Shown here: positions 3,345 through 23,500 of the stretch, piece by piece
Layout of the letters: each line of letters opens with the position of its first letter
How positions within the stretch are numbered: the stretch's first letter is position 1
Sequence record: NC_031043.1
DNA length: 64,000 nucleotides
Strand: one strand, 5' to 3'
Notes under the pieces: generated by a model
Told to the model about the DNA's origin: nothing
The model's input: the letters and a program-made list of their open reading frames with translations, nothing else
Database searches by the model: none
Position numbers and translations under genes: made by a program

Positions 3345-4796
3345 ATGGGAATGTATACAGCGTCCAGTTTACAGCTGCTGTGTGATTTGGTGAACCGGGA
3401 TAACCCCGGTCTACCTAAACCCTTCATGCCACAAAACGTGGCGTTGAAAGGCACACCTGTTGCAAAGGCTGTGAACGGAAGGAACACACAGGCTACTTTT
3501 GTAGCCAAGCCTGGGTTCGGTCTGCAGGGGACGTTAACGGTCTATTACGACCGTATCAATTTAACGAACCTCTTCCAAAGTAGACCGTTAGATGTAACAG
3601 TGCCGAGAACTGCCGCTACTGTTAAAGACCTGTTACCCATTGTAAACGAGAAGTACGGCCTTAACTTGCAGGCTGAAGATATTACCACTCCGGCAGCCGC
3701 ACTGACGTTACTTGCAACGCCCACTGCAGTAACACTCACCATTACCGCCGCCTCGTTCTGTTTTGCTGGGACGTTGACCGTTTCGTATCTGCCTGAGCCG
3801 ATTGGTTATTATCCGAACAGTGGGCCGGGTACGAAATATCTGATGGCTGGTAATGAACTGTACGGTTATTTCGGATTAGTCGAGCAGAAAGAACTGATAT
3901 CAATTGCCGAGTTATGGTTAGCCGCCTTCCCCGGGGCGACGTCAATAACTGATACCGGTTTCAAATGGTTGAAGTTCTTCTACAATGGTAAGGTGGTATA
4001 TCTCCCCACTTGCTTAGTAGGCACTACAAGTTGGGTATCCCTTTACGGTAAAGGTTTAATCTTCGGTACAGGTGACACGGGTAACCCGCCTTCAGGTACT
4101 ACACCAGTCGAGCAGTTGTTCTACCTCACGAAAACTGACAGTGATAAATCGCATTACTTCAGTTTGAATGTTCCTTTCGATGGCAGCCAGGGGTTGACTT
4201 CTGTACTTGGGTTATTGGTTCGTTTGGGTGACGGGGTTAATGCCGGTGCTTGGGGTAAAGAAACTTCGATTCAGTACACGAACACGGTGATGTTCCAACA
4301 AGTCAGTGGGTCAACTATCTTAGTGGGCAACCTGAAAGGCAGTGGGGGTTCTTGGATACCGTCGTATCAGGACACTGGCTGGTACCCGGTTCTCGAGTTA
4401 TTAGACCCGTCTCAAATCGTGTTGCCGCTGGCTGACGTGGAGACTGTGCTGGCATGGGAGGCCCGTCCATTACCGGTTGAGTCAATTAATCCAGAACCGT
4501 CTATCAAACCGCTAGAGCTTAATTTCTTCGCAGAAGACCAACCTATTCCGGTACCGACGACTTCTGAGAACATCGACGTTATTATCAAGCCATTGTTCCT
4601 GTTAGAGCCTAACGTGACTACTGCGTTACCGTTAGCCGGGTATGCTGAGGCCACCGGCCCTGGGATTACACCTATCGAGATAGGTACACCTGCTTCCGTA
4701 CCGACACGTCCGTTAGCCGTCACAGTGGATACGGCAGAACCAATAATTAAAACGAATCTTTCAGCGCTGGATGGCGAATTGAATGGTTTCCAGTAA
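3345..4796 (+). CDS. Virion structural protein, cassette type A, copy 2
   Basis: NRDNP..RNT..YYDR N-terminal domain, YPNSGPG..GYFG domain, Pro-rich C-terminal region, ends NLSALDGELNGFQ. Confidence 0.75.
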   Translation: MGMYTASSLQLLCDLVNRDNPGLPKPFMPQNVALKGTPVAKAVNGRNTQATFVAKPGFGLQGTLTVYYDRINLTNLFQSRPLDVTVPRTAATVKDLLPIVNEKYGLNLQAEDITTPAAALTLLATPTAVTLTITAASFCFAGTLTVSYLPEPIGYYPNSGPGTKYLMAGNELYGYFGLVEQKELISIAELWLAAFPGATSITDTGFKWLKFFYNGKVVYLPTCLVGTTSWVSLYGKGLIFGTGDTGNPPSGTTPVEQLFYLTKTDSDKSHYFSLNVPFDGSQGLTSVLGLLVRLGDGVNAGAWGKETSIQYTNTVMFQQVSGSTILVGNLKGSGGSWIPSYQDTGWYPVLELLDPSQIVLPLADVETVLAWEARPLPVESINPEPSIKPLELNFFAEDQPIPVPTTSENIDVIIKPLFLLEPNVTTALPLAGYAEATGPGITPIEIGTPASVPTRPLAVTVDTAEPIIKTNLSALDGELNGFQ

Positions 4797-13894: not shown

Positions 13895-14551
13895 TTAGGC
13901 TTCTGCTACAAACTTCTCACGCATGCCTTTGAGTTTAGTGTACTCACTCTTCTCGGCCGCAATACGTGCGTCCCGTTTAAAGTCAGTCAACTTCTCATGC
14001 AGCGCGTTCGTACGGCTTACGATACCTGAATTCAACGCTTTCAAATCATCCAGCGTAAACTCCAGCTTTTCGTTATTCGCGTCCACCCAGTAACCCGGGC
14101 TTTCATCGACACTGAGATAACGAGCAATCGCAGCCAGCGCTTTTTCATCAGTCTGGTAAACACGCCCACCCAGCTCGATAGGTTGCACTACCGCTTCGCT
14201 GTATGCCTGATTTACCCACGCAATCAAATCGTGCAGCAGTGCGTAGCACTTGCCTGACGTTGAGATACGCTCTGCCTGACGGGTTGCCAAATCGATTTCC
14301 AGCACGTCTTTGATAAACGTGTGTGCTGACTTAAGCACGAACTTAATCTCCAGCGGAGACAGTCCCTGCTCTTTCAGCTGAGCGGAAAGCTCGTCGTCTT
14401 TCATCCCATCGAGTAAACGATAGTGTGCCAGACGTGACAGCGACGGGTTCCAACGACCATCACTCAGATGACCATCGACGAACTGACCGTGACGGTCGAC
14501 GAGTTTCCCGCTGTTCAGGAAACGATTTTTTATTTCGTCATTACTAAGCAT
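13895..14551 (-). CDS. DUF4376-like tail-fibre-associated protein
   Basis: The C-terminal half PIELGGRVYQTDEKA..YWVDANNEKLEFTLDDLKAL..K resembles the DUF4376 pattern (G..f..D..s..W..aDN..v.lt...l..l), a domain usually encoded beside tail-fibre genes. Confidence 0.55.
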   Translation of the reverse strand: MLSNDEIKNRFLNSGKLVDRHGQFVDGHLSDGRWNPSLSRLAHYRLLDGMKDDELSAQLKEQGLSPLEIKFVLKSAHTFIKDVLEIDLATRQAERISTSGKCYALLHDLIAWVNQAYSEAVVQPIELGGRVYQTDEKALAAIARYLSVDESPGYWVDANNEKLEFTLDDLKALNSGIVSRTNALHEKLTDFKRDARIAAEKSEYTKLKGMREKFVAEA

Positions 14552-15093
14552 TCAGTTTTCCCCACGATGCCGATATCTTTCAGCAGACCGTAGTCGAGGA
14601 ACTGATAGTCCTTGGCCAGGTCGTACTGCCAGATGAGGTTGTTAATACGTTGCTCTTCCGTAATCTCTTCGGCCGTATTGAACACCCCTACGTGTTCCCA
14701 AATCTCAAAGTAGTTACATTGGTCTTTACTGTTGCGGACAATAAGGACTTTATTGAGTGGGAACGACTGCGCCACTGCAACCAGAGAAGTTACCGCTTTA
14801 CCGTGATTGGTACGGTACAGCACTTTCAGTTTGCTTGGCGGGGTTTCCAGCATACGCTCTTCGAGACCGGTGTTACGCAGCTCAGCCTGTGCCAGTGAGT
14901 TGTGACCCTGCTCCACGCAGTCCAGTTCAATCAGCACATTCAGGGAATGACGCACCACCAGTCGTTTAACAACGTCGGTGTAGTTCTCAGCTTTACACAG
15001 CAGAGTTACATCGAACAGCTTGTGCTTCGTCAGGAACTGGTCCAGCAACGTTGTATCAAGCCTGGTAAAATTGTGAATCAGTAATGACTTCAT
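14530..15093 (-). CDS. Hypothetical accessory protein of the radical SAM operon
   Basis: Open frame overlapping both neighbours (translational coupling); start placed at MKSLLIH; no motif recognised. Confidence 0.55.
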   Translation of the reverse strand: MKSLLIHNFTRLDTTLLDQFLTKHKLFDVTLLCKAENYTDVVKRLVVRHSLNVLIELDCVEQGHNSLAQAELRNTGLEERMLETPPSKLKVLYRTNHGKAVTSLVAVAQSFPLNKVLIVRNSKDQCNYFEIWEHVGVFNTAEEITEEQRINNLIWQYDLAKDYQFLDYGLLKDIGIVGKTECLVMTK

Positions 15094-16417
15094 TGGTCTT
15101 TTCCTGTTTAACTGGAGCGTGCTTATGTTCAACTGCCGGAGCTTCGGGCTGAGCACGTGAAAGGGTTGGGAGTTTGTTTTGTGCGGATGCCTTCACACGG
15201 CACTCGTAGCAGTTACAGGACAGTTTCTCGAACTGGTCACCATAAGTGCCGAAACGACGTTCCCACCATTGGGCGGTCAGCAGTTTAGCCGTAGTCCAAC
15301 CACACTGGCGGCGCTCAGAGTGATAAGCTTTACGGGCTTCTTCTTCGCCATCGCCATTCTCATACGCAGCGGCCACGCAGGACGCACAGATGTGTTTGGC
15401 TGGGCAACCCAGACATGCATCCGGGTAAGACTGCCACTGGGTCTGTACTTCGTTCAGCAGTTTGCCACCGTCGGTGTTGATAATCTCACGACCAACCAGT
15501 TTGGCAATTGCTTGACGCGTAGTGACCGTTGACATGAAGCGGTTACAACCGTAGATGTTACGGTCAAAGCCGAGACAGGTCATGTGTACCGTGGTACCAC
15601 AGTGAGGACGCAGACGCTCTGGGTCGTAACGAATCTGATCGTCATGCAGAAGCTTTTCACGCCAGTCCGGTTTCCACAATTCATCGACGTTCATGCCACG
15701 TGGGGTAATGTGCCCCATTTCAGCGGTCGGGTCTTTGTGCAAATCTTTACCAATCCAGTATTCCAGCACTTCAATCATCTGGTTAGAGATGCCGAGCGCC
15801 ATATCACGTGGAATGATATCTTCGAAGACCATGTTACCGTAGATAGTACCACCGCCTGATTGGTCAATCAGGGACTTCATGGACGCCGCATAATGCTTAA
15901 GCGTGTCGTGAGTAAAGGTGGCTTTAATACCCAGGTCATTAATCTTCATGGACTTGAGGTAATGGTAGCCTTCCAGCGCCTTCTCATACGAGCCCTTACG
16001 GGAAGTCGTAAAGATACGGTGCTTATCGTGCGTTTCAGGCAGACCATCGATTGACACGCCGATAGACAGCTTCGGATACCAGCGCTCAATGATTGAACGG
16101 TTCAGCGGTTTATCAAACAGCGTGCCGTTCGTGGAGATGGAGAACATGTACGGACGATTGTCTCGTGCCGCCAGAATCTCTGCAGTTTCAAAGGCCGCAA
16201 TCAGCAGCTTCGGTTGCAGGAAAGGTTCACCACCGATAATGTCGATAATCGCGCCACCCAGGTTAGGTTTACCTTTGTCGCGGTCAAAACAGGCGTGGAT
16301 GAAATCCACCACATCTTCTACACGGTTATTACGTGGAAACTTGCGCTCGTAGCAGTAATCGCAGTCGAGGTTACACGACAAGTTCGTAACAATCTGATAC
16401 GTTACGTCCATAGCCAT
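15056..16417 (-). CDS. Radical SAM/SPASM peptide maturase (CXXX-repeat target type)
   Basis: CNLDCDYC (CX3CX2C), GGEPFL, ISTNGT, VSIDG..HDKHR, and C-terminal CX7CX9C plus CLGCPAKHICASC (CX2CX5CX2C) plus RQC, i.e. SPASM-type auxiliary cluster ligands. Confidence 0.9.
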   Translation of the reverse strand: MAMDVTYQIVTNLSCNLDCDYCYERKFPRNNRVEDVVDFIHACFDRDKGKPNLGGAIIDIIGGEPFLQPKLLIAAFETAEILAARDNRPYMFSISTNGTLFDKPLNRSIIERWYPKLSIGVSIDGLPETHDKHRIFTTSRKGSYEKALEGYHYLKSMKINDLGIKATFTHDTLKHYAASMKSLIDQSGGGTIYGNMVFEDIIPRDMALGISNQMIEVLEYWIGKDLHKDPTAEMGHITPRGMNVDELWKPDWREKLLHDDQIRYDPERLRPHCGTTVHMTCLGFDRNIYGCNRFMSTVTTRQAIAKLVGREIINTDGGKLLNEVQTQWQSYPDACLGCPAKHICASCVAAAYENGDGEEEARKAYHSERRQCGWTTAKLLTAQWWERRFGTYGDQFEKLSCNCYECRVKASAQNKLPTLSRAQPEAPAVEHKHAPVKQEKTNEVITDSQFYQA

Positions 16418-16430
16418 AACAGCATCCCCC

Positions 16431-17303
16431 TCAGGAGTTAAGATTCAGGTAATTGTGCAGATACTTGTAAGTCTCTACACCGATAATTTGTGCCATGGCG
16501 TTACAGCCTGAGTTGACGTAAAACTCTACGTTCTCATTGTGCTTAATATCGCCGTTCGGCTCGACCAGTTTCAACTGGCCACAGGCATTACAGTTTTCGT
16601 GGTCGAAGAACTTCTCGAGACGGAAGACTGTATTAATCCCATTCACCGAATTCAACTCACGCATCTGAGACTCTAACTGCTTATAGCCGTAGATAAAGTT
16701 CAGAACATGATCCTGATTGAGAGGTTTGGCCATCAGTTTGTCAAACGTCAGGGTCATTGCACCCAAACGCAAGTGATGCATTGCCGAATGTAAACGCAAC
16801 GTATCTTCAAACCAGCGTGGCTTACTGACTTGTTCGCGGGTCAGCACGCCCCACGTAACGACATTGTCCAGCTCAGACATCACTTCAAAAGCTTCTTGCG
16901 CCCCGTCTTCCACAAACGCCATCAGACTGCGGTCACCACCTTCGAAGGTATCGATGGAGACGATGATGCGGTCAAACGTTTTCAGGAACTCGAGTTGCGA
17001 GAGCTTAAGTTTACGGCCATTGGTAAACAGCAGGTGTTTTGCAGAAGGCACTTGCTCACGCGCCTGTCCTACGAAGTCGACTAACTTCTGATAGGCAAGC
17101 AGCGGTTCGCCACCAGTCCACAGGAATTCCTCGACAAGAGGATTTTCTTTTATAATGTCCACCATTGCCTCTTTGTGTTTTGTTTTCGAGACATCACCTT
17201 TCGCCATGTGAGCCGCTCCTCCACAGAAGGAGCAGTTCAGGTTACACTTCGACGTAAGCGCAATGTCAATCATGGTTGCAGACGACTTAGGGGTATCGTG
17301 CAT
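16431..17303 (-). CDS. Second radical SAM enzyme with a short, twitch-like C-terminus
   Basis: CNLNCSFC (CX3CX2C), WTGGEPLL, FTNG, IVSID; C-terminal CNAC..VEPNGDI..GC. Start is uncertain (MHDTP at 17303 or MIDIA at 17273). Confidence 0.85.
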   Translation of the reverse strand: MHDTPKSSATMIDIALTSKCNLNCSFCGGAAHMAKGDVSKTKHKEAMVDIIKENPLVEEFLWTGGEPLLAYQKLVDFVGQAREQVPSAKHLLFTNGRKLKLSQLEFLKTFDRIIVSIDTFEGGDRSLMAFVEDGAQEAFEVMSELDNVVTWGVLTREQVSKPRWFEDTLRLHSAMHHLRLGAMTLTFDKLMAKPLNQDHVLNFIYGYKQLESQMRELNSVNGINTVFRLEKFFDHENCNACGQLKLVEPNGDIKHNENVEFYVNSGCNAMAQIIGVETYKYLHNYLNLNS

Positions 17304-18228
17304 CAGGATTCTTTTTCCACAGATTTTCCATGAAAGTGAAAATCGGGTCTGTGAGTCGGACGTTCTCACCGGCCTTAATCAAGCGCTTATCATGGTACGC
17401 CTCAAGAATAGCATCCAGTACCTTATTCCGGTCGTTCAAACGATTCAGTTCACCCACGGTAACTTCACTGCGAGTAAAGGAACTGACCGCCTGTTGCTCT
17501 TCGGCCGACAGGAGTCCCGCTTCATTGACTTTACCAACCAAGAAGGTCAGTACACGATGTAAGTCAGCGGTGGTATTAGGTTGCTCACCGTATTCACACT
17601 GAACCAGATAATTCGTCCATGGCTTACGGATACGTTTGGTAATCTCGTATTCGTCCGTGATTGCGGTCCACTTCATATCACGGTGTTGCCATGTAAATTT
17701 GTAGGAGTAAGCCCACAAGTCAGCCAGACAATCAATGCCCAACTCTTCGTAACCTTCAACCGGATAGTAACGCTCCAGGTTGTGGTAATCGGCATCCGGC
17801 ACTTCTGCTGCTTCAACCAGCGTATAATAGAATGGGAAGGAAGACGGGTACTCCCAGCCCCACTGACGCTGAATCATCGGCACCATGCCGTTTTCTTTAA
17901 ACGAAGCGAACACCATCTCGATAGGCATGGAGTAGTTCAGTACCGCATCGGTAAAGAAATACTTGTCGTTCACCAGCTTGCCGAAATACTCATCCGTACC
18001 GTTTAAGATGTACAGGATTTTAATGTGCAGACCTTCCGGAGTCGTGAACTCTTCACGGACTTCCGCGTTGTCTAAAATATCACGAGGACGCAGACGAGGG
18101 AACTCGCCCGGGTTCATGCAGATTAAACGCAGACGGTCGTTGACGTGTGCATCAACGCTGTCAGGCAACCCGAGGTGAATCGGATAGTTAAAGTTGGTGC
18201 GGAAGGCAAGATGCGAATTATTCTTCAC
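17287..18228 (-). CDS. Hypothetical accessory protein of the radical SAM operon (about 313 aa)
   Basis: GTG at 18228 is preceded by TAAGGAG, which overlaps the stop of the 69-aa gene; the longer ORF-track start at 18318 overlaps that gene. No motif recognised. Confidence 0.65.
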   Translation of the reverse strand: MKNNSHLAFRTNFNYPIHLGLPDSVDAHVNDRLRLICMNPGEFPRLRPRDILDNAEVREEFTTPEGLHIKILYILNGTDEYFGKLVNDKYFFTDAVLNYSMPIEMVFASFKENGMVPMIQRQWGWEYPSSFPFYYTLVEAAEVPDADYHNLERYYPVEGYEELGIDCLADLWAYSYKFTWQHRDMKWTAITDEYEITKRIRKPWTNYLVQCEYGEQPNTTADLHRVLTFLVGKVNEAGLLSAEEQQAVSSFTRSEVTVGELNRLNDRNKVLDAILEAYHDKRLIKAGENVRLTDPIFTFMENLWKKNPDARYP

Positions 18229-18238
18229 GGAAAACTCC

Positions 18239-18448
18239 TTAGGAAGGCCAAGTGACTGCTTTTGCGCCACCGGACGATGACCAGCTACAGCTGCCATTGC
18301 AACGGTAAGATGCGGCATTAATGCCGTTTAAACGGTTAGCATTGTTCACGGTACCGCGCGTCGCAATATAGGTGTTCGCTTGGGCGGTAGTGATGTAACC
18401 TTCAATACGTGCGAGTTGTACGCCAACCTCATTAAGGGATACGGCCAT
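18239..18448 (-). CDS. Short CXXX-family paralogue P3 (69 aa, only 2 Cys)
   Basis: MAVSLNEV..NNANRLNGINAASYRCNGSCSW aligns with the N-termini of P1 and P2; TAAGGAG SD. Confidence 0.8.
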   Translation of the reverse strand: MAVSLNEVGVQLARIEGYITTAQANTYIATRGTVNNANRLNGINAASYRCNGSCSWSSSGGAKAVTWPS

Positions 18449-18457
18449 GAGAACTCC

Positions 18458-18856
18458 TTACGGTCCTGAGCACCCGGAGCAACCCGTACATGAACTGGAG
18501 CAAGAACCAGAACAACCACCCGAGCAACCACCAGAACAGCTCGTCGAACAAGTCCCTGTACATGTTCCCGTACAGCTACCAGAACAGCCACCTGCGCAGC
18601 CTCCCGTACAGCTGGAAGAACATGAAGAACCACAGGTACCTGAACAGGTACCGGTACACCCGCCCGAACATGCAGAACCACACGTCCAACTGCAGGTGCC
18701 GCCACAGTGATAATAGTTTGCGTCTTGACCACCAAAGCGGTCTACGTTGTTTGAGGTTTTTGACCCAATGTACGACTGTACACCGGCTTCGGTTTTAAGA
18801 GCGGCTGATTCAATGCTGTTAAGCTGTGTTTTTACTGCATTAAGTCCAACTGGCAT
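18458..18856 (-). CDS. CXXX-repeat protein P2 (radical SAM target candidate)
   Basis: 50-aa N-terminal part followed by an 82-aa Cys/Ser/Gly/Thr tail with 21 Cys (18 CXXX units, then CTG CSG CSGP); TAAGGAG SD. Confidence 0.9.
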   Translation of the reverse strand: MPVGLNAVKTQLNSIESAALKTEAGVQSYIGSKTSNNVDRFGGQDANYYHCGGTCSWTCGSACSGGCTGTCSGTCGSSCSSSCTGGCAGGCSGSCTGTCTGTCSTSCSGGCSGGCSGSCSSSCTGCSGCSGP

Positions 18857-18868
18857 TTTTTTATCTCC

Positions 18869-19255
18869 TTACATCGGACCGGAACAGGCAGAGCAGCCTG
18901 TGCAGGAACTTGAACAGGAGCCTGAGCAGCCTGCACCACACCCGCCAGAGCAAGATGAAGAACATGCCGAGCCGCAGCCACCGACACACGTCCCGGAACA
19001 CGTCCCTGCGCAAGAACCAGTACACGTACCAGAACACCCGCCAGAACAGTTACCCGAACAGCTCGAACAACCAGAGGTACAGCCTGCAGAACAAGTCCAA
19101 CTACAACTCCCGTTACAACGGACGTCGCCGGGACTCATTCCTCCTAAGAAATTTGAGTTATATGCTTTCGATGCCACCTGTGCATCCACCGATGGACCGG
19201 TAGCGATTTGCAGGCGGGCCATCCTCGCACTAACATCGTTGAGTTTAACGGCCAT
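18869..19255 (-). CDS. CXXX-repeat protein P1 (radical SAM target candidate)
   Basis: 46-aa N-terminal part followed by an 82-aa tail with 21 Cys in CXXX/CXX spacing; AAAGGAAG SD. Confidence 0.9.
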   Translation of the reverse strand: MAVKLNDVSARMARLQIATGPSVDAQVASKAYNSNFLGGMSPGDVRCNGSCSWTCSAGCTSGCSSCSGNCSGGCSGTCTGSCAGTCSGTCVGGCGSACSSSCSGGCGAGCSGSCSSSCTGCSACSGPM

Positions 19256-19269
19256 ATGCTTCCTTTAAA

Positions 19270-19296
19270 GGGTGAGACTCGCATAGAGTAACACCC
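19270..19296 (-). promoter_or_regulatory. Imperfect hairpin between the last tail-fibre gene and P1 (weak terminator or attenuator)
   Basis: On the minus strand GGGTGTTACTC-TATGC-GAGTCTCACCC is followed by only TTT and then the P1 SD. Confidence 0.4.
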
Positions 19297-19310
19297 TGAC
19301 GTTATAAGAG

Positions 19311-20510
19311 TTATTTGGTGCCTGCCGCAGACTGAACGTCGTCGCGTGTGGTCAGGTTGGCGTTGATGTGAACGTTTGCCTGTACAACACCACCCGTGTT
19401 CTTGTTCAGGTACTGGTCGTGCGGGTTTGCCGCCGACTGGTGGTTTGCCAAGTTCTGGTTAGTAGTCGCAAGGTTACGCTCAAGCGCAGCAATACGGTTT
19501 TCTAAGCCAGCGTTAGCATTACCCATATCCGCAATCTGCTGTTTCAGGTTAGCGATTTCCTGATTAGCAGCCGCCAGTCCTTGCTTCAGCGTGTTAAGCT
19601 GCTGAGACAATAACCCGACCTGCGTTTCCAGTACCAGAATCTCATCCATCAACTCAGCAATTTGCAACTGGGTTTTCTGGTAGTTCTGGTCAACCACGTT
19701 TAACTGGGTGTTCCACGTTGCAATCGAACTGACCAGTGCCGCAATCTTCTGCGCCAAATCAGTGTCGGTAGCATTCAGAGTACCAATGTCTTGCAGGACG
19801 GCGTTGATGTTGCTCTGCACGGTCTGGACAAGCGCACTGACTTCTGCGGTAGAGTACACGTCCAGTTGACCACGGGTCAGCTTGTGAACGTTACCTTCAG
19901 CATTACGGTGCTCTTCCAATGCATCGAGCATCTCTTGACGATACGCTTTAAGCATGTTTTGAATCTGTACCATTTCGGCACTGGCACCCAGACGGATGGC
20001 ATCGTTCAGCTTAGACAACAGCGTGACGATATATTCAAAACCAAAGAAGTCACCGAGGTCACGGAATGCCGGAGCACCCGCAAACTCATCCGGAATGTTA
20101 CGCAGTTCGTAGAAGTTGATAGTCGGGTCGTCTAAGTCCAACGACTCCACACACTGGATAATACTTTCTACGTTAGCGGCGTACGGCCCACCCACAATCT
20201 GCGCGCTGACAGTAATGTCGGATGGAACAGACGATTTGGTGATTACGATAGCGGTCGCAATCTCACGCCCACCCACCATTTTGGTTAATGACGGATGCAA
20301 CAGAATCGCTTCGTAGTTTGTTCCGCGTACCAACGGTTGGTTGGGAGCATTCACCGGAGCAATTCGAAGCGTATCAACAAAGAACGGACCTGTCGGGAAA
20401 GCAAACGCTCGGTTAATGGTTCCCGTTCCGAGTTTAATCGGATGAGAGACCGCGTTACCGGTGTTAGTTCCAAACAGGTCCAATGGGTACTGCATTATAA
20501 CCTTACTCAT
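19311..20510 (-). CDS. Short tail-fibre-like coiled-coil protein
   Basis: Shares the YPLDLFG..N..F.TGPFF..L N-terminal domain with the three large fibres; long heptad-rich segment; HQSAANPHDQY motif. Start placed at MSKVI (AAGGAG SD). Confidence 0.7.
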   Translation of the reverse strand: MSKVIMQYPLDLFGTNTGNAVSHPIKLGTGTINRAFAFPTGPFFVDTLRIAPVNAPNQPLVRGTNYEAILLHPSLTKMVGGREIATAIVITKSSVPSDITVSAQIVGGPYAANVESIIQCVESLDLDDPTINFYELRNIPDEFAGAPAFRDLGDFFGFEYIVTLLSKLNDAIRLGASAEMVQIQNMLKAYRQEMLDALEEHRNAEGNVHKLTRGQLDVYSTAEVSALVQTVQSNINAVLQDIGTLNATDTDLAQKIAALVSSIATWNTQLNVVDQNYQKTQLQIAELMDEILVLETQVGLLSQQLNTLKQGLAAANQEIANLKQQIADMGNANAGLENRIAALERNLATTNQNLANHQSAANPHDQYLNKNTGGVVQANVHINANLTTRDDVQSAAGTK

Positions 20511-20565
20511 CGGAAAAGCTCCTTGATGGTGAGCAAAGAATGGGGAGCCGAAGCTCCCCACTTAT

Positions 20566-23500
20566 TTACATGCTCAGTGAGGAATCATGAATCATAACAT
20601 CAAGGAGAGCAGCCCACTGTGCATCGTAATAGATGTCAATGTAACGGCCTCCCGCGAATGTTCTTTCTTCCGTCCAGTAAAAGACTGGGGCTTTAGTGGT
20701 ACTATCCGGCCGCAGTGCCAGAATGTAATCCTTTCCTGTTGGTACAGTTAAGGTATACAGACCGATACTACTCGGCCCCGGAACCGAGGCAGGGATTGCT
20801 GGGGTAGGGAGAATGACCGCAGTCATATCCAACGAAGACGATACGAGCTTGGTTGCCCCATCCTGTATCAATTCAAACGCGATATAACACGGTGTATTCC
20901 CTGGCGCCTCCTTCACAACCAAACACAAAGCGTTCACTTGGTTTAACAATAGACCGCCTGAGCCGATAGTAAAGGACTGCGTACCGCCCGACCCACGAGA
21001 TACCCCGTTGATATAAATATCGACTGAGTCATCCACCTGCACGTTCAACACCAGATTCAGCGATGTTGGCGTAAAGTAGGTCTTCGTTCCCCATACAACA
21101 CCTGCTGCCAACGGTGGGGCATTCACCTTAATCGCTGGTGCAGCTAATGGCGGTGTATAGGAGTTGGTCGACTGCAGAACTTGTGGCCAGAGTTTCTCCA
21201 CTTTATTCGTAGGTTGGAACCAGTTCCCATTACTTACCTGTGGCAGGGTAATACGCTGCACCGCATCAAATGCACCGGCTAACGCGTTCGCATTGTCTAA
21301 TGCGGCGGCGGTGCCGTATGCTTTCGATAGGTCTGCACCCGGACGGCCAAGGTTCCAGAATCGTGTTGCATTCTGAGACGCCGCACCATACCCGAATCGA
21401 CAACTACGAGCAAACGTCGGGGCAGCGACCGCTAAATCAACTTCCAGATATTTATACGTCGGGTCATTACGCAATTGCCCTAAAGACAGTGCGCGCTTCG
21501 CGGCGTTAATTGTCCGGATGTTGGTGTCACGGTCACCAGTAGTCGGCAGCTTCGCACGTTGTACCGCGATGTAAAGCTTATTACCGCGACGCTCTACGTA
21601 CGCATGAGCATACCACGTGTTCCAAGCCAACTGGTCAACCACGGACGTATCCACAACACCAACTGTACGAGCATTGGATTGCAGATAGTTTTCTTTCAGG
21701 ACCGTAATCGATTCTGCACCCAGATGACCTTCGATGGAATTACTGATAACCAAACACAACGTTTGTTCACGACTGGCCGCGTTCTCGTTGGCTTTTAAAG
21801 CAGCCACAACAATCGCAGTCGCGTCGTTATCGGTATCGTTGGAGGTAATTACCGTGTTGAAGACGTAATCCCCTACCAGCTCATCAGAGATGAACCCGAC
21901 AAACGTTGCGGTGTTCAGTGTACATTCCACGATGTCATCGGCTGCCACATACTTCCACGCCAGCAGTTCACTTTCGTTAGCCGGACGGGTTTCTGTAGTA
22001 GTTGCGTGACTGAAGCGATACCAGCTGTTATAGATATCTTGGAAGGACGGGAATGAGAACGTGTTAATCGTGCCCAAGTTCTCCATGTTCGAGTAAATGG
22101 ACTCGGTCAGACTCCCGCCCGGAAGGTAGCCGTGCGCATACGGGTTATCCGCGTGTGCCAGTAAAGCCCCTACCTGCCCCAAACGTTTCACACGGGTGAT
22201 GTTCACTTCGCCTAACGCGTTAAGTGTTGTCACCACGTAACCAATGTACAGCCGAGAGTCCGTATCCGCCAACTGTGTTTTGGATACCAGATACTCAGCA
22301 GCCCCGGTGGTTGCATTTAACTGCACGTGGAAATAGAACGTCTGGTTCTGATACCCCGATGGGAACAACGCCTTGAAGTCAAACTGGCTGACCGGGACGA
22401 TATGTTCTTCCATCTTCGCAAAGAAAGGAATTGCCTGGGTGATATACAACAACATCCCTTCTGCCAGCTGAGGACCAAACAGAATCACCTGACGAGAAGG
22501 ACCCGTTGTGAAGTTACGGGAGTTGTTTGAATACGCGGTGCCGCCGTAATACGCCCCATTCGAAATCCATTGCGCTGCCAGAATCTCGTTGGTTTCAGGT
22601 AAATGCACAATATCGTATTCACCGTACGCCGGGTTAGCGCTATCTCTCGATAGTGTCCAGTTCGCAAAGTTCAGGTCACAGGTAATCGTTGGGGTGTACA
22701 TCGTCCCACCGCCCACTGTAGGCATATACCCTAACGCATGCGTGCGAATAACCCAACCGTCTGAACGTTTGATTAACCGTAACTGCCAGTAGTCGCCCGT
22801 AACTGCAAAACCTGTGGTAGCAGCATTAACACGATCTTCTGTGGCGATGGTCGTTGTACCACTAAAGTTTAAGGTCAGCACCCCTGCCGCAAAGGTCATT
22901 GGGACACGGAACGTATAGTAGTACATGTAGTTGATACCGTCAGCCTCTGTTTGACAGAATGTTGCGGTAGCAATACAAAGGTTCACGCCCCCTAAGTCGA
23001 AGAGGTTCAGCCAAGTCACTTTCCATTTAGAGGCAGCTTCACTAAACTTCGGAATGCGGCTGACCAACATGGATTGGAAATCCGCCCATTGGGTCGTGCT
23101 CACCGTCACCCGGTCCGCGTGCACCGAGGCGTTACCGTTGATGTTTTTGTAAGCGCGAGTTTCCGCTTGGTAGAACGCGGTACCGTTAAGGTAATTATTC
23201 GTACCATCAAACACATAAGCGCAACGTGCTAACGTGTTATAGGTTGCCTCAGGTAAAGAGGTGCGGTCGTTACTTGGACCCCATCCGCCGTAACCCGGGA
23301 AGTTATAAGACCCCGCGGTATCGTACCCGGTCTGAATACAGTCGCCGGTGTTAGTGCGACGGAACAACGCTTTCTTTACACTGTTCCCTAACTGAATCAT
23401 CCCACGCATGCGATACTGGTAAACAGACCCATACGCACCCAACACAGCTGGCTCACCACCCATGCGACCTGTTAACGGATTATCCCAACGTAAAGCTTCG

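Follow-up and report, generated by a model that had tools for sequence, protein, structure and literature searches.

P3 of Erwinia phage vB_EamM_Phobos, a conserved short third member of a cysteine-rich protein family in a radical SAM gene cassette of SPN3US-like jumbo phages

We studied a small gene, P3, in a 64,000-nucleotide stretch of DNA (the window) from sequence record NC_031043.1, which corresponds to positions 124001-188000 of Erwinia phage vB_EamM_Phobos (KX397372), an SPN3US-like jumbo phage of the genus Derbicusvirus with a genome of 229.5 kb. Region 15000-20600 of the window matches this phage with 100% identity. P3 (PHOBOS_166, gp166; a hypothetical protein in GenBank) lies on the minus strand at 18239..18448, stop codon included, and encodes 69 amino acids between an ATG start and a TAA stop (all translations used genetic code table 11). 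Residues 1-49 (18302..18448, minus) comprise an N-terminal domain with a heptad helix (approximately residues 4-16), a second helix and an N-x-L-x-G...Y segment. This domain is followed by a Cys-x-Gly-x-Cys-Ser-Trp box (residues 50-56; 18281..18301, minus), which holds all the cysteines of P3 in Phobos, and by a Cys-free tail of 13 residues (residues 57-69, S-S-S-G-G-A-K-A-V-T-W-P-S; 18242..18280, minus). The comparisons below identified P3 as a deliberately short third member of the phrog_6085 family, within a cassette of seven genes that SPN3US-like jumbo phages share with related uncultured phages and that consists of P1, P2, P3, a phrog_8030 protein, two radical S-adenosylmethionine (SAM) enzymes and a phrog_7988 protein. 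In general, P3 has the N-terminal domain of the family (approximately 50 residues) and an invariant Cys-x(2-3)-Cys-Ser-Trp box, after which a further 5-20 residues follow.

The two longer members of the family, P1 (18869..19255, minus; 128 aa) and P2 (18458..18856, minus; 132 aa), each have 21 Cys in a CXXX ladder and are both without GenBank annotation. P1 and P2 span the whole phrog_6085 profile (E 5.2e-39 and E 5.6e-39, respectively), whereas P3 matched its N-terminal half only (E 2.6e-24, residues 1-68 on profile positions 1-67 of 129). Profile-profile alignment with hhalign over the first ~65 residues related P3 to both P1 (E 1.1e-20) and P2 (E 4.5e-19), and the box R-C-N-G-S-C-S-W has the same letters in P3 and P1. 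An earlier reading made from the sequence alone (the sequence-only reading) had described P3 as a shared N-terminus, then RCNGSCSW as in P1, then a Cys-free tail and a stop, and the translation confirmed each of these parts.

Several of the GenBank annotations of this region do not follow the family's reading frames. In Phobos, the opposite-strand open reading frames (ORFs) PHOBOS_167 (18447-18710, plus) and PHOBOS_168 (18768-19268, plus) cover the real P2 and P1. P1 and P2 are also unannotated in CR5, Huxley and Caitlin, with opposite-strand ORFs called there instead. The SPN3US annotation has, as gp166, an ORF that covers part of P2 out of frame, and it lacks P1 and P3.

P3 has its own Shine-Dalgarno sequence, AAGGAG (18454..18459, minus), which lies 5 nt before its start codon and shares bases with the stop codon (TAA) of P2. 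The same arrangement of a stop codon fused to a Shine-Dalgarno sequence, TAAGGAG, was found at 18862-18868, 18454-18460 and 18235-18241 (minus), that is, at the junctions of P1 with P2, P2 with P3, and P3 with the next gene. These repeated junctions suggest that translation of P1, P2 and P3 may be coupled and roughly equimolar. A Cys repeat was sought in the two remaining frames over the P3 tail and beyond it, and none was found; one of these frames extends the next gene upstream, and the other is stop-rich. Only 10 nt separate the P3 stop from the start of the next gene, so there is no space for a hidden repeat. The proposal that P3 is short but in frame, has a Shine-Dalgarno sequence of its own and did not arise by a frameshift was upheld. 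A sigma-70 promoter scan returned fewer sites than shuffled sequence, and a terminator scan was near expectation; such scans are uninformative for a phage that brings RNA polymerases of its own.

To examine the family beyond Phobos, we searched with P3 by tblastn and obtained 62 phage records, all SPN3US-like. Loci were extracted from 15 GenBank phages of five genera (Derbicusvirus, Wellingtonvirus, Machinavirus, Seoulvirus and Erskinevirus), and all 15 had the order P1 (127-130 aa, 21 Cys), P2 (130-142 aa, 20-23 Cys), P3 (68-69 aa, 2-4 Cys) and the phrog_8030 gene. The same long, long, short arrangement was present at 17 IMG/VR loci, those new to the set included, and was retained in the distant contigs L033, L034, L039, L041, L043 and L044. 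Every match in a word search of 5.8 billion proteins with P3 was 61-69 aa in length. Across all loci, P3 had either 60-77 residues with 2-5 Cys or an added Cys-free domain. Neither a long third copy nor loss of the third gene was seen among the relatives examined in GenBank, IMG/VR and metagenome contigs. The Cys counts of P1 and P2 varied together by lineage (21/21, 21/23, 21/20, 15/16, 22/22 and 31/35), while that of P3 stayed at 2-5; within the SPN3US-like genera, the P1 count was exactly 21. Where P3 has four ladder Cys, P2 has 20, with one rung missing (G-S-A-S-G), and where P3 has two, P2 has 21-23. In L030 and L031, the second radical SAM gene is present twice: besides its usual copy after phrog_8030, an additional one (3622-4533; 303 aa) lies between P1 and P2.

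Pairwise comparisons of P3 orthologues by Nei-Gojobori counts gave a proportion of non-synonymous differences (pN) of ~0.1 against a proportion of synonymous differences (pS) of 0.7-0.9 overall, and ~0.10 against 0.71-0.78 within Derbicusvirus. The ratio omega was ~0.05 where the synonymous distance (dS) was computable, and synonymous sites were saturated between genera. In the 13 tail codons, Phobos differs from CR5 or EarlPhillipIV by one non-synonymous and eight synonymous changes. We also compared contigs from four public runs over 1,201 letters of the window. Near-identical phage contigs differed from it at three P3 sites, two of them synonymous third positions and the other a change of Thr26 to the consensus Asn, and a diverged contig differed in the P3 tail at each third base. 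Residue 26 (position 18372, minus) is Thr in Phobos and Asn in nearly all other orthologues, including those of the 99% identical metagenome contigs and protein P0001. Judged from these substitution patterns, P3, its tail included, is under strong purifying selection.

These data bear on the possibility that P3 is what truncation left of a full-length paralogue and is drifting to loss. P3 is indeed short and without the repeat, and a weak 8-nt resemblance (GCAGTYAC) between the two-Cys tail of some lineages and a shifted frame of the four-Cys tail of others could hint at an old frameshift. However, no relative has a long third copy or is without the gene, omega is ~0.05 with saturated synonymous sites, P3 length is fixed at 68-69 residues over the five genera, and the two-Cys tail is also present in the three most distant lineages. 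We consider a decaying remnant to be refuted by this conservation and to have hardly any probability. The sequence-only reading had named a full-length or absent P3 in close relatives, with signs of relaxed selection, as the outcome that would speak against it; what we found was the short copy everywhere and purifying selection. We are highly confident that P3 is a real, ancient and functional gene that is not long in any relative examined.

The tail of P3 is conserved within lineages but has more than one form. A four-Cys tail, C-S-W-x-C-S-G-x-C-S-x-G-A-G-N-R, is found in Machina-, Seoul- and Erskinevirus, and a two-Cys tail, C-S-W-x-x-S-G-G-A-K-x-V-x-aromatic-P-S, in Derbicus- and Wellingtonvirus and in metagenome relatives. 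The statement in the sequence-only reading that P3 has almost no Cys repeat was thus exact for Phobos (two ladder Cys, one CxxxC unit), but does not extend to the three genera whose P3 has four ladder Cys. In a tree of the first radical SAM enzyme of the cassette (enzyme 1; midpoint root only, with two rows on long branches), Derbicus- and Wellingtonvirus formed one clade with support of 94/98. Three outlying lineages in this tree also have the two-Cys tail, which indicates that the Phobos-type tail is at least as old as the four-Cys type. Derivation of the two-Cys tail from the four-Cys tail by frameshift was rejected, as there is only the 8-nt resemblance and the distant two-Cys lineages speak against it.

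We built a profile from 16 P3 orthologues, and a search of 1.84 billion representatives with it identified 27 proteins, most of 60-76 residues. Multi-stretch matches to EF-hand and beta-propeller proteins in this search were attributed to repeats and low complexity, and these proteins were not considered relatives. Tails of the deep relatives include C-S-W-S-S-S-G-R, C-S-W-T-A-S-G-R and C-S-W-T-C-S-G-T-C-T-G-S-C-R-A-R-A-S-A-T. The contigs of these relatives hold the same cassette, with P1/P2/P3 Cys counts of 21/21/3 (L039), 15/16/2 (L041), 31/35/5 (L043) and 22/22/3 (L044).

In two lineages P3 was found to be extended. The proteins P0014 (210 aa, L033) and P0020 (147 aa, L034 and L035) have four ladder Cys followed by a Cys-free extra domain, of ~140 residues in P0014 and ~80 residues in P0020, and both sit in the same slot between P2 and phrog_8030. 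The extra domain of P0014 had no family match, and a word search with it returned only itself. In L033 (6190-6215), P3 reads through an 11-G tract into this 142-residue orphan domain, which has no start codon of its own. The closest relatives of L033, L023 and L026, have G-G-R-stop where L033 has the 11-G tract, and in other assemblies of the L033 phage type the extra domain is out of frame with P3 (the proteins in this set are P0014, P0039, P0042, P0043 and P0045). The 11-G run is either a homopolymer sequencing error or a real length variation that switches between short and long P3.

The N-terminal domains of P1, P2 and P3 are related but distinct. Each paralogue has 37-43% identity to the other two in this domain, and 70-72% mean column identity across genera. 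In P3 the columns E16, Y18, T21, A24, I28, G32, N38, L40 and Y48 are invariant, and C50, G52, C54, S55 and W56 are unchanged across the 16 orthologues. C-S-W is present in every P1, P2 and P3 of the distant cassettes. In every P3, Cys-Ser is followed by Trp; in P2 the next residue is Trp or Phe. Most lineages show, in P1, P2 and P3 alike, a heptad pattern with R-h-x-x-h-E at residues 11-16; a pattern of this type was reportedly described as a trimerization motif by Kammerer and colleagues in 2005. In Derbicusvirus, P1 has Arg11 without Glu16, and P2 and P3 have Glu16 without Arg11. The N-terminal helices (residues 4-16) also shift together by lineage, with S-L-N in P1, P2 and P3 of Derbicusvirus and S-L-K in the others. 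The DNA of the three helices is unlike, so recent gene conversion is unlikely.

Structural and family searches with P3 itself gave little. The AlphaFold2 (AF2) monomer model had a low mean predicted local distance difference test score (pLDDT 50.6), with helices at residues 5-16 and 21-31, and was too poor for a fold search. P3 had no Pfam or NCBIfam match, and a search of the ESM Atlas gave a top score of 0.82, which is at the level of a lead only. The fiber-domain leads from that search, Gp53-like_C and PTR (0.79), were below a meaningful level. In the PDB profile search, the best match of P3, MatA (E 0.29), and a resemblance of its heptad region to gp41 (E 0.87) were both considered noise. 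A tail-fiber-like nature of P3 was not supported, as no homology to a known fiber domain was found in Pfam, in the PDB profile search or among the virion neighbors.

The genes that follow P3 are also on the minus strand. The phrog_8030 protein (PHOBOS_165; 17287..18228; 313 aa; E 1.5e-147), whose gene always comes after P3, probably begins with a GTG at 18228 that is 6 nt past its own Shine-Dalgarno sequence, AAGGAG, and its homologues begin at a matching M-K-N/S-D/N. The annotated ATG at 18270, which would give a 32-nt overlap with P3, is probably too far upstream, judging by that start site and alignment. The AF2 model of the protein (pLDDT 84, predicted template modeling score (pTM) 0.80) is rich in beta structure in its N-terminal half and helical in its C-terminal half. 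Against the PDB, Foldseek returned nothing below E 0.1 for this model, and the best VIA-align match (Z 4.8 over 61 residues) represented a common arrangement; the model may therefore represent a new fold. It is possible that the protein is a novel leader-recognition protein.

Radical SAM enzyme 2 (PHOBOS_164; 16431..17303) matched PF04055, PF13353 and phrog_1802, and has the radical SAM core only, with no full SPASM match. Enzyme 1 (PHOBOS_163; 15056..16417) is a radical SAM/SPASM protein that is distantly PapB-like and CXXX-repeat-maturase-like, with matches to NF047865 (PapB; E 1.1e-32, 113.6 bits vs a cut-off of 340) and TIGR04115 (E 1.3e-32, 113.7 bits vs a cut-off of 350). The phrog_7988 protein (PHOBOS_162; 14530..15093; E 9.4e-86) is the last of the seven cassette genes, and also ends the distant cassette of L041. 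The radical SAM Cys motif of enzyme 1 begins at residue 15, so that the protein has no N-terminal extension of the RRE (RiPP recognition element) type, where RiPP denotes a peptide synthesized ribosomally and modified post-translationally; no RRE or PqqD-type family was among its Pfam and NCBIfam matches. Among cellular proteins, the relatives nearest to enzyme 1 share 22-35% identity with it (Geobacter group, Thermodesulfovibrio and Saccharibacteria), and no CXXX ladder was found beside them. By tblastn, close relatives of enzyme 1 were confined to the 62 records that were also found with P3, and matches elsewhere were weak and partial. From this search and the scan of the cellular contigs, the cassette looks phage-specific.

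A minimal substrate was one of the roles suggested in the sequence-only reading. On this view P3 would act independently of P1 and P2: its Cys-x-Cys-Ser-Trp box alone would be modified, perhaps by radical SAM enzyme 2, to give a small product with its own function. The box is the single feature that all P3 proteins share, the cassette has two different radical SAM enzymes, and the Trp that always follows Cys-Ser in P3 would suit a cross-link to an aromatic ring. In addition, enzyme 1 weakly matches the cyclophane-forming maturases YhhB, GrrM/OscB and DynA (E 1e-13 to 1e-14). However, no leader peptidase or exporter was recognizable among the cassette proteins in Pfam, NCBIfam or PHROGs, and conservation of the 50-residue N-terminal domain of P3 equals that of the box, which would not be required of a discarded leader. 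That P3 strictly co-occurs with P1 and P2 at every locus, and in a fixed order, also argues for a joint function. Based on these points, we consider an independent product quite unlikely.

Several characterized systems resemble the cassette in part. In Methanococcus voltae, the SPASM enzyme CrpC cross-links the Cys-rich protein CrpA with thioethers, and CrpB, a low-Cys protein with the first 47 residues of CrpA, raised CrpA modification when co-expressed, for which its authors proposed a chaperone role (PMC13692751, 2026). The Crp cluster and the phage cassette would both have a SPASM radical SAM enzyme that acts on a whole Cys-repeat protein (modification in the phage cassette being predicted from its genes), a leader-like N-terminus ahead of C-terminal Cys repeats, and a low-Cys partner that shares the N-terminus (~47 residues). 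The sequences are nevertheless unrelated: CrpC belongs to TIGR04463, which enzyme 1 matches only at E 9e-15. The Crp repeats are of 17 and 34 residues with C-x-x-Q/D, whereas those of the phage are a period-4 ladder of C-(G/S/T/A)3. The Crp cluster has one long and one low-Cys protein with one enzyme, in contrast to two matched long proteins and one short protein with two enzymes in the phage. CrpC has an RRE, while none was seen in the phage cassette, and the Crp host is an archaeon.

Based on this comparison, the strongest rival to the interpretation we prefer is that P3 is a CrpB-like maturation helper, which would bind the radical SAM enzymes or the phrog_8030 protein via its N-terminal domain and raise the extent or order of P1 and P2 cross-linking while staying outside the final product. 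Such a helper, which was not among the roles suggested in the sequence-only reading, has a published analogue in CrpB beside CrpA (PMC13692751), and P3 fits the description of a low-Cys paralogue, as it shares its N-terminal domain with P1 and P2 and has 2 Cys vs 21 and 21. The three proteins resemble one another most in the N-terminal helix, the lack of an RRE-type extension in enzyme 1 makes a separate adaptor plausible, and P3 is always directly before the phrog_8030 gene. Yet a pure adaptor needs neither an invariant Cys-Ser-Trp box nor a conserved tail, C-terminal domain fusions are unusual for a chaperone, and the three N-terminal domains clearly differ past the first helix; the role of CrpB is itself hypothetical in PMC13692751. 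By analogy, a helper role may apply, and we regard it as a serious contender that is somewhat on the unlikely side.

The CXXX-repeat peptide and maturase families (TIGR04114/TIGR04115, PF27846) are alike in that period-4 Cys repeats adjoin a radical SAM/SPASM enzyme. With TIGR04114 (cut-off 20 bits), P2 passes at 25.6 bits, P1 is below at 17.8 bits and P3 had no match; PF27846 gave a weak match in one distant P2. Enzyme 1 is outside the TIGR04115 equivalog (113.7 vs 350 bits) and is a distant relative only. Going by these profile scores, the phage cassette works like the CXXX-repeat family but is not a member of it. The PapB/freyrasin ranthipeptide system contains the best-scoring characterized relative of enzyme 1, and PapB is described in PMC9413430 as forming thioether links from Cys in repeated C-x3-D motifs. 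The acceptor Asp/Glu is absent in the phage ladders, which have Gly, Ser, Thr, Ala and Asn between the Cys, and the phage substrates are 128-132-residue proteins with a 50-residue N-terminal domain. The phrog_6085 entry in PHROGs includes P1, P2 and P3 but gives no function and no long or short sub-classes. Our literature searches found no paper on the SPN3US-type cassette, and for the TIGR04115 family no characterizing paper and no mention of a short paralogue. Within the reach of these searches, the long-long-short architecture with P1 and P2 ladders of matched length has no published description.

The reading that we tentatively favor, as plausible rather than probable, makes P3 the third chain in an assembly with P1 and P2 that is linked by the N-terminal domains and in which P3 takes part only as far as the Cys-Ser-Trp box; a cap or adaptor subunit of a heterotrimer had been one of the suggestions of the sequence-only reading. 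P1, P2 and P3 would be made in similar amounts through the identical TAAGGAG coupling junctions, and their N-terminal domains would associate into a three-chain assembly to which P3 would contribute its chain up to the box. One of the radical SAM enzymes would probably cross-link the box of P3, as in P1 and P2. Beyond the box, the length-matched Cys ladders of P1 and P2 would run on as a pair, leaving the C-terminus of P3 as a free end; because that end would be free, P3 could carry different short tails, or a whole extra domain, by lineage.

We infer a three-chain assembly from several observations. The N-terminal domains are distinct from each other and each is conserved across genera, which is the pattern expected of distinct subunits. 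RiPP leaders that serve one enzyme are usually near-identical between paralogues. The coupling signals are identical and the ladder lengths of P1 and P2 co-vary. Lastly, the C-terminus of P3 tolerates various tails and domains, its monomer model is poor, as would be expected of a chain that folds only with partners, and the heptad pattern of the first helix in most lineages may be a trimerization motif.

The same gene arrangement bears on the suggestion of the sequence-only reading that P3 is a competitive regulator, which would occupy the maturases via the shared N-terminal domain and so limit or time the modification of P1 and P2. The shared domain and the tight operon arrangement are the only features in its favor. 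Co-translation from one message through identical coupling signals leaves no means of timing, there is no obvious gain for a lytic phage in throttling its own enzyme, and the conservation of the tail and box would be left unexplained. We therefore view a regulatory role as very unlikely.

There are also observations that weigh against the three-chain assembly. The close likeness of the N-terminal helix in P1, P2 and P3 would agree as well with a common recognition sequence for one enzyme, and the low pLDDT of the P3 monomer could equally be that of a disordered leader peptide. The PDB profile search with P3 gave no significant match (the best, E 0.29, was the MatA match noted above), and P3 had no similarity to the neighboring virion proteins. 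In addition, the seven-gene cassette of L041 adjoins a nucleotidyltransferase gene, an Acb2/Tad1-hairpin-like gene and a GIY-YIG gene, not tail genes, so that a virion or tail role for the assembly rests on the neighborhood in SPN3US-like phages only. L041 (1-10210) also has a further radical SAM gene at its left contig edge.

In the SPN3US-like phages, the cassette comes after two genes homologous to those of SPN3US gp167 and gp168. Both of these are virion tail proteins by mass spectrometry, and gp161-166 were undetected in virions, in which gp167-173 were listed (PMC5694885, supplementary table 1; PMC5105663). As P1-P3 are outside the SPN3US annotation that was searched, virion proteomics could not have detected them.

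If the three-chain assembly is extended to its fullest form, P1, P2 and P3 would constitute a new enzymatically cross-linked phage structure, with a coiled-coil head, two stitched ladders running from a Cys-Ser-Trp collar, and P3 ending at the collar as a swappable display point, which in one lineage would be extended by the 142-residue domain with its frame set by the 11-G run. We put this picture forward as speculation and think it unlikely to hold in full. The strict rule of two matched long ladders and one short chain is a concrete and testable structural hypothesis. SPN3US holds the same cassette, and amber-mutant genetics and published virion proteomics exist for this phage; the unannotated P1 and P2, and in SPN3US also P3, could not have been found by existing proteomic searches. 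P3 is the easiest entry point to the chemistry, with 69 residues, two Cys and one box that is shared by all three paralogues.

P3 would belong to a kind of system in which Cys-rich proteins are modified by radical SAM enzymes and accompanied by a low-Cys paralogue. Stitching of a whole protein by a radical SAM enzyme has only just been demonstrated experimentally (CrpC, 2026; PMC13692751). If our interpretation is correct, the phage cassette would be a second, unrelated case of whole-protein stitching, and the first in a virus.

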